A stretch of DNA of 64,000 bases, taken from positions 124,001-188,000 of the forward strand of contig CBFFRQ010000068.1 in the NCBI GenBank assembly GCA_965644315.1, written 5' to 3'. Positions within the stretch are counted from its first letter, which is position 1, and each line of letters opens with the position of its first letter. Both the position numbers and the translations under genes were made by a program. Positions 5,715-12,008 of this stretch are shown one piece after another. The notes beneath the pieces are model-generated. The model worked only from the letters and a program-made list of their open reading frames with translations. It was not told where the DNA came from and did not search any database. The DNA is from Caecitellus pseudoparvulus (taxonomy: Eukaryota > Protista > Bigyra: Bicosoecida).

Positions 5715-5786
5715 TGCACTTACGCGGAATTGAACCGCGGACCTCAGACTTACTAAATCTGCGTTCTACCACTGAACTACAAGTGC
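5715..5786 (-). tRNA. tRNA-Thr (anticodon AGT), intronless
   Basis: The reverse complement folds as GCACTTG TA GTTC AGTGGTA GAAC G CAGAT TTAGTAA GTCTG AGGTC CGCGG TTCAATT CCGCG TAAGTGC A, a full cloverleaf with A and B boxes and no encoded CCA. Confidence 0.93.
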
Positions 5787-6011: not shown

Positions 6012-8147
6012 ATGGGAACCTCTCCAAGCAAGCCACCAGGCACAACGTTTGCCGTGCCGGTGGTGCAGGGGAAGGCTGAAGGGGAGACTCCAATTTATCG
6101 CAGTGCTTCCTCTCCTCAGGCTCTCGTGGACAACTTCGAGGGGGTGAAGACGCTGTACGAAAATTTCATGTGAGGTGTGCAAGTTCCGCTAGACGCCCGC
6201 ACGGAGCCAGCACACACTGTACCACCGGGAGCTTGCAGGTGTGGCTTTCAGTCGTGTGCTGATCTACCCATGCTAGGGACGCGGAAGTGGACTGCCCAGG
6301 GCCGTGGCGAGTATGCTTGGCAGTCTTACGCTCAGGTGGAGCGGCGGCTGAGCAACCTGGGGTCTGGTCTGCTGGCGCTGGGTCTGAAAAAGGGCGACAT
6401 GCTTGGGCTTTACGCCGCCAACTGTGCCGACTGGGTTGTTGGGGAACAAACCTGCAACGCATACTCTTTGGTAGCAGTGCCGCTGTATGACACTTTGGGC
6501 CCGGAGGCCGTGGACTTCATCCTGGGACAGACCGAGATGCCGGCAGTCCTGGCTGCCCCTGCCATGATCAAGCCCCTAGCCAAGGTGGCAGCAGGGCGCC
6601 CTTCACTGCGGTACATCATCGAAATGGATGGGGATGCTTCATTGGGCGCTCCGGCGTCGGGCCACCCAGCTGCTTCCCTAGCCGACCTTCAGGCGTTGGC
6701 CAGTGGGAGTGCGCCCGGACTTGGGGGCGCTGGCGGCGCACTCGTCCTGCGCATGAGCGACTTGGAGGCTTTGGGTGCTGCCAAGCCCATGCCCCACGTT
6801 CCCCCTGCTGCCTCTGATGTGTGCACCATCTGCTACACCAGTGGCACGACAGGTATGCCCAAAGGGGCCATTCTGAAGCACGGCAACTTCGCAGCTGGTG
6901 CAGCCGGCGCTGCCAGTGCGGGCGTGGACCTCGTCCCTTCTGACGTGCACTTGAGCTACTTGCCATTGGCTCACGTGTTTGAGAGGCTGGTGCAGGTGGC
7001 GCTGATTCGCAGGGGTGGCAGCATCGGCTTCTACCAGGGAGATGTGGTGAAGCTTGTGGAGGACCTGGGCACACTCAAGCCGACTCTGTTCCCGTCTGTG
7101 CCCCGACTATGGAACCGCATTTATGACAAAGTCATGGCGGGCGTCCGAGAGGCAGGGGGCGTCAAGGCGGCTCTCTTTGCATACGCATATGAGGCAAAGA
7201 AGGGCTTCCTCCCGGAAGGCTACACCACGCACTCCCTGTGGGATGCGCTCGTCTTCAACAAGGTCCGGGCGCTCTTCGGTGGCCGAGTGCGCCTTATGGT
7301 GACTGGCTCTGCGCCTATCTCATCAGAGGTCAAGTCCTTCTTGCAAGTAGCCTTCTGTGCGCCTGTGTTGGAAGGCTATGGACTCACCGAAACAGTAGGG
7401 GCTGCTACCATCACCCCAGCAGGTGACTTCACGAACGGGCACGTTGGTGCGCCGATCGCCTGCACCGAGCTCAAGCTGGTGGACATCCCAGAGATGAACT
7501 ACTGTGCGCGTGATGAGCCGCAGCCTCGGGGTGAAATCTGCCTGCGCGGTCCCAACATCTTCGGCGGCTACTTCAAGAACGAAGCTAAAACAGCAGAAGT
7601 CATTGACGAAGACGGCTGGTTCCACACCGGGGATGTCGGACGCATCAATAGCAATGGGACTGTGTGCATTATTGACCGCAAGAAGAACATCTTCAAGCTG
7701 TCTCAGGGGGAGTACGTGGCTCCAGAGAAGGTGGAGGGTGTCCTTGGTAGGGCCCCGCTCGTGGCGCAGTCGTGGGTTTACGGCGACTCACTTCAGAGCT
7801 CCCTGCTTGCTTTCATTGTGGTAGATCCTGATGTTGCCGCGTCATGGGCGGCTGGAAAAGGTGCCGCCGTTGGGTCCACTCTGGAGGCTTGGGTGCAGTC
7901 GGATGCGCTGCTGGGTGAAGTGCGGCGTCAGCTTCAGGAGGTGCAGGACGCTGCCAAACTGAAGGGCTTTGAGCGACCCAAGGGAATCAAGCTGCTAGCG
8001 GAGCCCTTCTCTGTGGAAAATGGCTTGCTCACTCCCACCTTCAAGCTGAAGCGTCCTCAACTCAAGGCGCGCTACGGTGGAGACATCGACATGTTGTACG
8101 CTGGCACTGGCGCCAGCTCCGCGGGCTCGGGGGCTGCTGCACAGTGA
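6012..8147 (+). CDS. Long-chain acyl-CoA synthetase (ACSL/LACS family), about 688 aa; exons 6012-6169 and 6239-8147
   Basis: AMP-binding motifs ICYTSGTTGMPKG, SYLPLAHVFER and EGYGLTE, plus the FACS signature DGWFHTGDVG...IIDRKKNIFKLSQGEYVAPEKVE and ENGLLTPTFKLKR. A phase-2 GT..AG intron at 6170-6238 joins ORF 5898-6173 to ORF 6177-8147. Confidence 0.95.
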
Positions 8148-8279
8148 TGCGGGCGTTGGTAAATTCATCGCCACAACAAAAAACCTCGCCTGTGATGCCG
8201 TGGTTGCTCTGTGTCGCGATTCCCCAGCACCCACGCCTAGCTCAAGCTCTGCTTCCTGCCTGCTCAGCCGAGCCACATC

Positions 8280-8893
8280 ATGGCTGCCTCTGCTTCTGCA
8301 GGTGCAGGTGGAAAGTACGTGGACCTTTCTGGCGTGTATGAGTTGGATAGGGATGCGTCAGACAAGATTTCTATTTTTCTGAAGGAGGCAGGCTTCTCCT
8401 GGGCCACCCGCAGCGTGAGTGCTGCTCCTGCACTGAGCCAGCCTGGGCAGCACAGCATGGAGGCACGTGCCCTGCCCACACAGATGGCGGACATGATGGG
8501 TCTCACACTGACAGTGCAGCATACAGAGGATGGTTTCACTGGTACAGGCAAGACGTCTGTTGGCACTGGGACGTATGTCCTGGAGGTGGGCAAGGTACGG
8601 CACAGCGGAGCCGTCGCAGCGACAGCAGGCACCTAGCCCACATGCACCACACGCAGGCTTGCCCGTACGACATGGGCGGAAGCATCATGATGCTGACTTC
8701 CAAGCACACTGAAGATGGGCGATTCGAATCCGTTGGAGCGCTGCCTAACGACAAGGACCGCAAGGTGATCATGTATCACGGCAAGGGAGGGGAGGACAAC
8801 CCGGATGGGCTGCTGGTCATGACACACGTCCACGACAGAGAGGGCAAGGAAACCCACGTCATCAAGCGAGTCTTGAGGGCCAAGGCTAAGTGA
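8280..8893 (+). CDS. FABP/iLBP-like (calycin beta-barrel) protein, paralog A, about 160 aa; exons 8280-8414, 8484-8594, 8657-8893
   Basis: DLSGVYELDRDASDKISIFLKEAGFSWATRS|MADMMGLTLTVQHTEDGFTGTGK...LEVGK|...HVIKRVLR follows the FABP pattern GxW/YxLxxSexFdxyLKaLGvxxxxRk...l.I...gd.f....lG...R.y. Both introns are phase-0 GT..CAG. Confidence 0.7.
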
Positions 8894-9073
8894 CAGTAAC
8901 TTGGCTTGCAAGCATTGCCCCAACCCGAGCCGGTTTTCTCACATTTTTAGCTGGCAAAGGTGCTTTCCCCTGGGGGTGACAAAAATGCACCAAACGACTT
9001 GCAACTCTCAGCACGCTTTGCACGTCCGGTGGCCCACTCTCTACCGCTTCGTTCTGCTGCTTTGAAGCGGGCC

Positions 9074-9747
9074 ATGGCTGCTGAAGCCTCAGACTCGGCA
9101 GCTGCTGCTGCGCCAGTCGAGGCTGCACCAGGCACTAGCTCTGATCCGAGCAGCCCCCCGTTTGTGGACATGACTGGTGTCTATGAACTTGACAAGGCTG
9201 CCTCTGACCCGATTTCTTTGTTCTTGAAGGAGGTGGGGGTCCCTTGGGTGGGCCGAAAGGTGAGTCGTGGCGAGTGCGTCACACTGCCGGTCACCGGCAG
9301 CCTGCTCACAAGCTGCCGCGCTTTCGGAAGCCACAGGCAGCAGACAGCATGACTTCAACCCTCACCATACGCAATTCTCCAACTGAATTCTTTGTTGAGA
9401 ACAAGAACTTCTTCAGTACCAACACCAATACGATGCCGATTGGCAAGGTGTGTGCTGGCTCAAAATCCGCACCCCGCCGGTGACCTCGCAGCTCGCCCCC
9501 CAACCCTCCACAGGAAGCTGACTGGACAGCTGGCGATGGCAGCAAGGTGCCCATGACAGCCTCGATCATGCCAGATGGGGCAGTTATCATTCAAGGGCCG
9601 ATGCCAAAGCAGGAGGGAAAGCAGCTGCACAACGTACATGCCAAGTCAGGTGACGGTGTGGTCGTGACCATTGCAATCGTGAACGCGGACGGCTCAGACG
9701 TCGTCAGAGTCCGACGTGTATTCAAACGCAAGGCGGCCTCCAAGTAG
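9074..9747 (+). CDS. FABP/iLBP-like protein, paralog B, about 176 aa; exons 9074-9259, 9337-9447, 9514-9747
   Basis: PFVDMTGVYELDKAASDPISLFLKEVGVPWVGRK|AADSMTSTLTIRNSPTEFFVENK...MPIGK|EADWTAGDGSKVPMT...VRVRRVFKR. GDGSKV resembles the FABP xDxRKv turn and VRRVFKR the terminal strand. Intron positions are the same as in paralog A. Confidence 0.75.
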
Positions 9748-9755
9748 ACCTGCGT

Positions 9756-10831
9756 TCACAGCTTTGCAAAGGCGGGCAGGTCGCCGTACACTGGCATGTT
9801 GCTCTTGTCAGGCAGCGTCATGAGGGGCTTGTGCGTCAACTGACCACCGCCACTGACGTTGATAGTGACTCCCGAAACATAAGCAGCCCCGGGCGACAGC
9901 AGCCATACAACGGCCGATGCTGTCTCTTGCACCGTTCCCAGGCGCCTGGAGGGCAGGCTCTTGAGCAGCACGGGCACCAAGTCGTCTGTGGCAGCGCCGT
10001 AGTTGGCGAAGGCAGTCGGGTTGTACACGATGCCTGGCTCCACCGCATTCACCCGCACGCCGCTGGGGGCCCATTCCCAGGCCAGCGTCTTGGTTAGGTT
10101 TGTCACCCCCGCTCTCGCTGCTGCGGAGTGCGCCATCATGGGGAAGCCATTGCCGCCCTCCAGCGTGATGTTCACAATGCAGCCCCCGTGGTCAGCCATC
10201 CATGCTGCAAAAGCCTCCCGACACATGCGGAAGGTGCCGTTCAGGTTAAGGTCCACCACTGCCGCCCAGCCACGGTCTGAGAGGGCCTCGGCTGGGCACA
10301 GGAACTGCCCTCCTCCGTTGTTTACCTGCAGCGGAACGTGCAGCTACCGCGTGGATGGTGCGTGCGTTGAAGTACGGGCAGGCAGCAGGGTGACAGGGGC
10401 ACGCAGCACGCACGAGTGCATCACACCGCCCATGCTGCCTGATGGTGCTCTGGAACAACGCCTGGACCTGTTCCAGATCCCGGATGTTGCAAGCCACGGC
10501 ATGTGCGCGTCCGGAGTACCTGCGAGCGGCCACGATGGCAGCACGAGCACGGGAGTGCATGCAAGCTAAGGCTGCAGTACTTTTGCGGGGGGGGTACATA
10601 CCCCTTGCTGTTCAGGTCTGCTGCCGCCTCTTGGAGCCTGTCTTCGTTTCGGGCTGCGATGACAACAGTGCCCCCGCAGGCTACGAGCTCCTCGGCAATG
10701 GCTTTGCCGATCCCAGTGCCTCCCCCCGTGACAATGCTAACATGGCCCTTGAACAAATCCCTTCGGAAAACGGGTTTCCACTCTGGAGCAGGGACGTTTC
10801 CTGCAGCGGGAGCCGAACCTTGCGCTGCCAT
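9756..10831 (-). CDS. PECR: Peroxisomal trans-2-enoyl-CoA reductase (SDR family), about 301 aa; exons 10831-10602, 10519-10414, 10325-9756
   Basis: Rossmann motif IVTGGGTGIG, then ACNIR, LVNNGGGQFLCPAE..S..GWAAV..NLNGTF, GFPMMAHSAAARAGVTNLTKTLA.EW (the HSxAAR variant typical of PECR in place of YxxxK) and GIVYNPTAFANYG. The C-terminus ends in PTS1 -AKL. Confidence 0.9.
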
Positions 10832-11305
10832 GGCAGACGAACTGTGCACCGTGCTGCGGAAATCGCTCTGAGCCTTTGCAGACCGCACTGCAGGCTACTG
10901 CAGCAAGTCAACCAGGGCCGATGTGTGTCCCTCGCTGAGCGTGGATAGTGTACCTGCCGTTCTTCTTTAGGGGACTGGTCATAAACTTACATTTTGTCAA
11001 GTACTAGCTGAACATTTCTAACACTCATAGTCTTGGCTCCTTCACTAAAGCCATGTCTGAGTTTGCACTGTAACTGAAGCTTTCTTTATTGAACGCGAAA
11101 GATCCCACCCCGACGATGTTGCCATTCGGGAAGAGTCAGCTTGCATCAAGGCTGGGTAGACTGCGACTCCGAAGGGTGACTGGAGGGCAGTATTATCTTG
11201 AACTTGTGGTTCCTTCGTAGGCTCTCTTTCCGCCAACATGTCACAGGAAGGCAGTCGCAGCGCTATCGGAGCACCCGGTTGCCGCGGAACCTCCGGAAGA
11301 GTTCT

Positions 11306-12008
11306 TCATTTTGTAACAACGCGAGAAAACTGAATGCAGACTCGGGCAAGTTCCTTCCCACTCGCGTCGCTCAACACAAGGGTGCGATGGAGGATGTGTG
11401 GGTCAGCGGGGTCGAGTGTGGACGTCATGATCATTGTTTTCGTCTTATCTTTGGCAAACGGCCCGCGCAATTCGATAGCACCACCTGTCAAGACGGACGT
11501 CATCATGGGTGCCTTGGAGCCATCCCCGCCAGTGAACTCTGACTCCTGTGAGACACAGGGAGATGCGCGAGCTTGTGAGGATAAGGTGCGGAATATGTGT
11601 GCCACTCGCTCCTGGTGCACCTTGCCAATGACCATGCGGTTCTTCATGGTGAACAACGCGGTGGCTTGATCAAAATCGAAAATTGTCGCACTGTGACGGA
11701 TGGTCAGCTTCATTTGCAGGCTGCCTGCCATCTGCGCGAGGGGAAGGTGGCGTGGCGGAGTGGAGCGGAAGCTGAGGATAGCTCTGGCTCCGCTCGCATC
11801 CGCTCACCTTTCGAACGATCCAAGGAGCCCCCGCAGCCCGCAAGAAGGGCTCCATGCTGTCACTCTTATCCTTGTCTATTTTCCAGGTCCCGCTCTGGTC
11901 CACAAATGGTGGCACATGCTCTCCTGCAGTCGCGGTGGGTCCAGGATCTGCCCGCGCAACTGGCTCACTGCCCTGCCCGGGAGTACCGGAGCTCGCTTCT
12001 GCCGCCAT
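11306..12008 (-). CDS. FABP/iLBP-like protein, paralog C, about 183 aa; exons 12008-11808, 11731-11621, 11545-11306
   Basis: PFVDQSGTWKIDKDKSDSMEPFLRAAGAPWIVRK|MAGSLQMKLTIRHS...MVIGK|ESEFTGGDGSKAPM...VCIQFSR, containing the canonical calycin GxW motif. The middle exon is 111 nt, as in paralogs A and B. Confidence 0.75.

Follow-up and report, generated by a model that had tools for sequence, protein, structure and literature searches.

Why should a long-chain acyl-CoA synthetase, three small carrier-like proteins, and an enoyl-CoA reductase be encoded side by side in a protist genome, and is there anything in their proximity beyond accident? The five genes occupy positions 6012-12008 of the window analyzed here, a stretch of 64,000 nucleotides (C68:124001-188000) within a 30.6 Mb, 215-contig assembly (G+C ~60%), and a first-pass annotation had described them as an operon-like fatty-acid handling cluster. 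On balance, we favor reading this locus as a conserved lipid-handling neighborhood that is older than the species and contains two enzyme-carrier pairs, with co-regulation and the hand-off of substrates as the inferred ties between its members. The first pair would be a cytosolic or membrane-associated acyl-CoA synthetase (LACS) with an A-type carrier related to fatty acid-binding proteins (FABPs), and the second a single-copy peroxisomal trans-2-enoyl-CoA reductase (PECR) flanked by carriers of the B/C type. The genes are laid out as follows.

6012..8147, plus strand: LACS, exons 6012-6169 and 6239-8147, ~688 aa.
8280..8893, plus strand: FABP-like gene A (A-type, LACS-linked), exons 8280-8414, 8484-8594 (111 nt), and 8657-8893.
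9074..9747, plus strand: FABP-like gene B (B/C-type, PECR-linked), exons 9074-9259, 9337-9447 (111 nt), and 9514-9747.
9756..10831, minus strand: PECR, exons 10831-10602, 10519-10414, and 10325-9756, ~301 aa, ending in -AKL.
11306..12008, minus strand: FABP-like gene C (B/C-type), exons 12008-11808, 11731-11621 (111 nt), and 11545-11306.

All five genes are spliced, and when their splice sites and reading frames are read on the DNA, every intron has canonical GT..AG ends. LACS, A, and B follow one another on the plus strand and are succeeded by PECR and C on the minus strand, where C lies upstream of PECR; the exon models confirm the earlier placement of C beyond PECR and on the strand opposite to A and B. 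The intergenic gaps along the cluster measure 132, 180, 8 (between the convergent stop codons of B and PECR), and 474 bp, and none of them holds a credible open reading frame, in keeping with the proposal that these are five consecutive genes with no unrelated gene between them. The gene order recurs unchanged in L001, an independent metagenome assembly of this species, which makes misassembly unlikely. Identity to the sister species is 64-79% in exons and 58-62% in introns, and third codon positions account for 16/22, 22/31, and 87/133 of the substitutions; given this stronger conservation of exons and the excess of third-position changes, the models represent real genes under purifying selection. 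“Operon-like” holds as a description of adjacency but not as a statement about transcription, since three genes are on the plus strand and two on the minus strand, B and PECR converge, and start and introns are separate for each gene, so this is no polycistronic unit. Very short spacers are in any case normal in this compact genome, as are GT..AG introns of ~60-80 nt. In the sequences upstream of the cluster genes, no common repeat or motif reaching 14 nt was found, and what they share is limited to short, chance-like matches.

The age of this arrangement can be read from the contigs of relatives that carry LACS or PECR, which were searched exon by exon with tblastn in two diverged clades. In the sister species, whose gene A is 75% and PECR exon 3 89% identical to those of the window, contig L005 carries LACS, A, and the start of B, and contig L017 carries B convergent on PECR, which is the window layout. 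In the second clade (L009, L012, and L013; LACS 68% identical), an A-type gene stands after LACS in all three contigs, and in L009 PECR and then a C-type gene are found ~2 kb upstream of LACS in divergent orientation. All of these relatives keep the three-exon carrier structure with its 111-nt middle exon. Synteny in related genomes, which the first-pass annotation had singled out as a check on the cluster, is therefore borne out in close relatives. A tree of exon 3 gives support of 100/99 to a split between the A-type genes, which in every case follow LACS, and the B/C-type genes, which in every case adjoin PECR; in the same tree, window gene C groups with the PECR-adjacent gene of L009 (92/93). 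The surroundings did not travel along: the window flank genes (an M8 protease, TsaD, and a 1,980-aa gene) have no counterpart on the relatives' contigs, and the second clade's giant cadherin-like gene beside LACS-A (L009) has a 62% orthologue in the window's genome that lies on contig C18 instead of C68. Both enzyme-carrier pairings, and their proximity within 6-8 kb, predate the split of the two clades and have survived rearrangements of order, orientation, and flanks. Non-homologous genes that are adjacent, with pairings kept in two clades while the flanks differ, make this a probable functional gene cluster.

The cluster is bordered on its right by a TsaD/Qri7-type gene, recognized by Pfam, and on its left by a tRNA gene that is not a member of it.

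5715..5786, minus strand: tRNA-Thr (AGT), called by ARAGORN.

The cadherin/TIG-like neighbor of LACS-A in L009 is related to a very large family of giant genes with frames of 3,000-8,600 aa; one 800-aa query gave 41 matches, with examples at C18:1096245-1098443, C68:861838-863451, and C68:96734-97792, the last of these ~27 kb before the window start.

What the two enzymes are is comparatively clear from their sequences. LACS was correctly named from the outset: it matches the Pfam AMP-binding family (PF00501) at E 7.7e-82, and when it is compared with proteins named long-chain acyl-CoA synthetase, identity reaches 45-53% across 96-100% of its length. It shares the AMP-binding architecture of these proteins (for example, Cafeteria FNF29_05478 and plant LACS6/7). 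Its closest named relative, at 53%, is the LACS of the bicosoecid Cafeteria roenbergensis, and many plant, oomycete, and chytrid LACS proteins follow at 45-50%. By sequence, then, this gene encodes a eukaryotic-type long-chain acyl-CoA synthetase. Plant LACS6/7 are peroxisomal and carry targeting signals; in contrast, neither a type 1 nor a type 2 peroxisomal targeting signal (PTS1, PTS2) is seen in the window LACS, which begins Met-Gly. The genome contains at least 4 LACS paralogues, and this is the only one that adjoins carrier genes.

The PECR assignment also stood. Exon 3 has human PECR (1yxm) as its best match in the PDB (E 2.6e-55), followed by a match at 8e-37 and then by peroxisomal DECR at 8e-30; the best named matches of the protein are PECR from diatom, haptophyte, and animals, and its Pfam families are adh_short and adh_short_C2. 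Both the solved structures and the named homologues place it closer to PECR than to DECR or to FabG-type short-chain dehydrogenases/reductases (SDRs). Like human PECR it ends in -AKL; the two are ~50% identical in exon 3 and of matching length (~301 aa here, 303 aa in human), and it has all family-invariant columns, 28 in number when protist, animal, and bacterial homologues are aligned. It differs in being flanked by FABP-like genes. The glycine-rich dinucleotide motif is encoded in exon 1. The -AKL tripeptide, a PTS1, also ends the sister-species and L009 orthologues, and other protist PECR orthologues end in -AKL or -ARL, while the bacterial homologues have no PTS1. The gene, which is single-copy in the 30.6 Mb genome, is by these features an orthologue of peroxisomal trans-2-enoyl-CoA reductase and is predicted to encode an NADPH-dependent reductase. 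We considered whether the want of the mammalian SDR tyrosine might mark it as defective and rejected the idea because that position is variable across PECR orthologues. On the P0275 contig, which carries a PECR relative at 61%, the gene after PECR is convergent and contains a fatty-acid hydroxylase domain (PF04116), so that a different lipid-related neighbor is found there.

The three small proteins are less easily recognized. Pfam, PF00061 and PF14651 included, returns nothing at E values up to 1, whether it is given any exon of A, B, or C, the open frame of L012, or eight small homologues; NCBIfam returns nothing for single exons of the three genes, and single-sequence PDB searches with the open frames of L012 and gene C give only noise. 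Homology emerges from a profile, A2, which was built from exon-wise references of the window and its relatives placed under L012:2905-3534, a naturally uninterrupted frame in which both introns are in frame. A mixed alignment (A1) and a further alignment (A3) were not used because the start of exon 3 had been placed under exon 2. Against the PDB, A2 retrieves 185 chains, of which the best 60 are all FABP/CRBP/CRABP (best E 4.7e-6), with some alignments covering residues 4-133, nearly the whole chain. Structure models were made for the full-length L012 frame and for part of gene C (window:11309-11731, minus strand). With A2 as its alignment, AlphaFold2 predicts for L012 a strand A, the helices, and nine further strands, that is, a ten-strand barrel with a helical lid, with a per-residue confidence (pLDDT) that is 80-97 across the barrel and drops under 50 only where the two introns are translated, and the best 50 Foldseek matches of this model are all FABP-type, with target-normalized TM scores of 0.75-0.83. 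For gene C, a partial model covering exon 2, the in-frame intron, and exon 3 shows nine strands; the best 50 Foldseek matches are again FABP-type only, at E ~2e-3, a weaker value attributable to the partial chain. By profile and predicted structure, the products of A, B, and C have the FABP fold and are putative carriers, as the first-pass annotation had supposed, and they fold as lipid-binding barrels in the two models; binding is predicted.

Window carriers and the metazoan FABP/CRBP/CRABP proteins (PF00061) have in common ~130 core residues, a ten-strand barrel with a helix-turn-helix lid, and a small, cytosolic, multi-copy character, and the homology that the profile detects lies mainly in strand A, the helices, and strands B-D. 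Animal FABP genes have four exons; the window genes, by contrast, have three, with the fixed 111-nt middle exon, lack a Pfam match, and in the case of B and C carry extensions. The Tyr position of the animal Arg-x-Tyr carboxylate clamp appears to read Leu or Phe in the window family, the equivalence to the animal residues being judged by inspection only. B and C, unlike A, begin with acidic N-terminal extensions that are rich in Ala/Pro/Ser, measure 30-35 aa, and do not obviously look like targeting sequences.

9074-9160, plus strand: N-terminal extension of B.
11910-12008, minus strand: N-terminal extension of C.

The C-type gene of L009 has a shorter extension than window C, and gene C itself is, at the DNA level, a paralogue of B in inverted orientation. 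Exons 2 and 3 start alike (8484-8594 and 8657-8720 in A, with the equivalents in B and C), so closely that MAFFT repeatedly superposed their beginnings; this likeness may reflect an internal hairpin repeat within the barrel.

How common are such carriers, in this genome and elsewhere? A search of the genome with A2 finds A, B, and C as the only stand-alone family members. The sole other match consists of two domains in a 1,301-aa open frame on the plus strand (C19:353571-357476, or L025:2572-6477). This frame has no Pfam match, contains at least two N-terminal halves of a FABP-like domain (E 1.4e-9 and 9.3e-8), and resembles large multi-domain relatives in public data, some of which have ankyrin or FYVE modules. 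Searched against 1.84 billion representatives, A2 finds at least 338 proteins at E 0.001 or better, among which are fragments of close relatives, many proteins of 160-185 aa, at least one of them from a Myxococcota metagenome-assembled genome (MAG), and large multi-domain eukaryotic proteins such as Cymbomonas KAK3258386 (E 2.8e-34, six domains), which has ankyrin repeats and in which Pfam sees Lipocalin_7 (PF14651). The Lipocalin_7 domains of algal proteins are among the best profile matches of the window family, but there they are repeated domains within ankyrin/FYVE proteins of 1,000-2,200 aa and not stand-alone carriers beside lipid enzymes. Against the family profile, animal FABPs score ~30 bits and environmental, bacterial, and algal relatives 45-135 bits; because the animal proteins score too low to enter the match list, those of the window belong to a distinct branch of the FABP-fold superfamily, one that is for the most part unannotated.

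If the two pairings are functional, then a simple scheme can be drawn for them. Carriers would solubilize free fatty acids or acyl chains and pass them to the neighboring enzyme, with the A-type carrier feeding LACS for activation with CoA; the acyl-CoA would then enter the peroxisome, where PECR would saturate 2-enoyl-CoA intermediates with NADPH, and the B/C-type carriers would handle substrates or products of this PECR branch. Our default guess for the substrates is general dietary or membrane long-chain fatty acids. Acyl-CoA oxidases and Pex14 are encoded in the genome, indicating that peroxisomal fatty-acid metabolism exists. The five genes are probably co-regulated, and co-regulation arising from a shared chromatin and promoter neighborhood may be what keeps them together. 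The mammalian PPAR-alpha regulon includes Fabp1, Acsl1, and Pecr and so unites the same three protein families through a transcription factor instead of through physical linkage.

Several observations weigh against the reading of the locus as a conserved, functionally coupled neighborhood. No peroxisomal targeting signal was found in carriers A, B, or C, and with none on LACS either, carrier and PECR may occupy different compartments. An exon-3-only profile finds just noise in the PDB, so the A2 signal comes from the N-terminal half of the fold. Gene C has lost the last-strand Arg, which persists in the other 8 of the 9 exon-3 sequences. In L009, the ~2 kb interval between PECR and LACS (L009:2850-4800) contains several overlapping open frames with no family match, and with this stretch unassigned, that cluster may not be uninterrupted. 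Finally, linkage is absent in more distant relatives, at 53-57% identity (L016 LACS, 56%; Cafeteria LACS, 53%; L018 PECR, 57%) and likewise for P0275 (PECR, 61%), and with the comparison limited to two clades, few independent events underlie the conserved linkage.

The comparison of just two clades leaves neutral linkage as the main rival, and the absence of linkage in the more distant relatives speaks for it too. Under this explanation, a tandem and inverted array of FABP-like genes merely happens to lie between LACS and PECR, there has been too little time to break it up, and nothing couples the genes functionally. That A, B, and C are paralogues, so that part of the cluster is simple duplication, suits it as well. 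We nevertheless hold neutral linkage to be unlikely, if well worth keeping in mind. Time alone sits poorly with a locus whose flanks differ on both sides between the clades, the orthologue of one flank being on another contig, and whose internal order and orientation have been rearranged, yet in which both enzyme-carrier pairings survive. The division between A and B/C types also predates the split of the clades, and each type has stayed with its own enzyme. With a single-copy PECR and only three stand-alone carriers of a family that is otherwise nearly absent from the genome, the cluster is more than a chance pile-up, and by a rough estimate, the probability of chance adjacency to both enzymes would be below ~1e-5.

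A more specific version of a coupled neighborhood would have it serve phytol and branched-chain acids, a substrate that the first-pass annotation had suggested: LACS would activate phytenic acid, PECR would reduce phytenoyl-CoA to phytanoyl-CoA, and the carriers would shuttle isoprenoid acids taken from prey. LACS-type activation and PECR reduction are indeed consecutive steps of mammalian phytol breakdown. No light-harvesting-complex genes were found in the genome, so the organism, which probably is a heterotroph with peroxisomes, could eat phototrophs. The next step of the pathway, however, requires a phytanoyl-CoA 2-hydroxylase, and no convincing one was found in the genome. The best match to the PhyH family (C64:332691-333302, or L024:784-1956) is a 390-aa frame that scores 37 bits and matches no solved structure, human PHYH included, at E 0.001 or better. 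Nor does any sequence feature point to branched substrates. We therefore regard phytol as a quite improbable substrate, and a role for prey lipids as speculation. Three further weak PhyH matches occur in 435-aa frames on C122, C2, and C45. Separately, the genome holds a tandem array of at least 5 complete 18S genes at C81:462535-506238, each ~1,697 nt long and spaced at ~8.45 kb, and a more divergent small-subunit (SSU)-like match on C213 is possibly organellar or a contaminant.

That the cluster is a bacterial operon gained by horizontal transfer, with introns added later, is highly improbable: the FABP-like family does have many bacterial members of 160-185 aa, the Myxococcota one included, and bacterial SDRs do reach 52-55% identity to PECR exon 3, but neither of two bacterial contexts examined has a LACS or PECR neighbor, PECR groups with eukaryotic orthologues that share a PTS1 ending absent from the bacterial proteins, LACS is of eukaryotic type, and all five genes are spliced.

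With the conserved neighborhood as our preferred reading, the locus can be set beside other eukaryotic clusters of non-homologous pathway genes, such as the fungal GAL and DAL clusters and those for nitrate assimilation in algae and oomycetes. Like them, it keeps functionally related, non-homologous genes adjacent; unlike them, it mixes enzymes with non-enzymatic carriers. We regard it as a probable functional gene cluster of a eukaryote, with a new branch of FABP-fold proteins at its core. The first-pass annotation had known of no such cluster in protists, and a full-text literature search that lacked most subscription-journal papers likewise found neither a LACS-FABP-PECR cluster described for protists nor FABP-like genes described for stramenopiles.

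The origin of FABP-type carriers has been placed after the point at which animals diverged from fungi and plants (PMC3796463). A family of this fold, detectable by profile, that a protist, bacteria, and algae all have is relevant to that placement. More speculatively, and with low confidence in the proposal as a whole, FABP-fold carriers might be no animal invention at all but an older family, unannotated in Pfam, of bacteria, green algae, and stramenopile-like protists, in which the A-type carrier became dedicated here to an acyl-CoA synthetase and the B/C-type to a peroxisomal enoyl-CoA reductase, the linkage being held by substrate hand-off.

For the family itself, which no curated model recognizes although public data contain at least 338 of its cluster representatives, the conserved pairings offer a concrete functional lead. 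In protists, non-homologous genes seldom form conserved clusters, and one that joins carriers to the enzymes that they may serve would be a simple system in which to study how fatty acids are channeled from uptake to the peroxisome.

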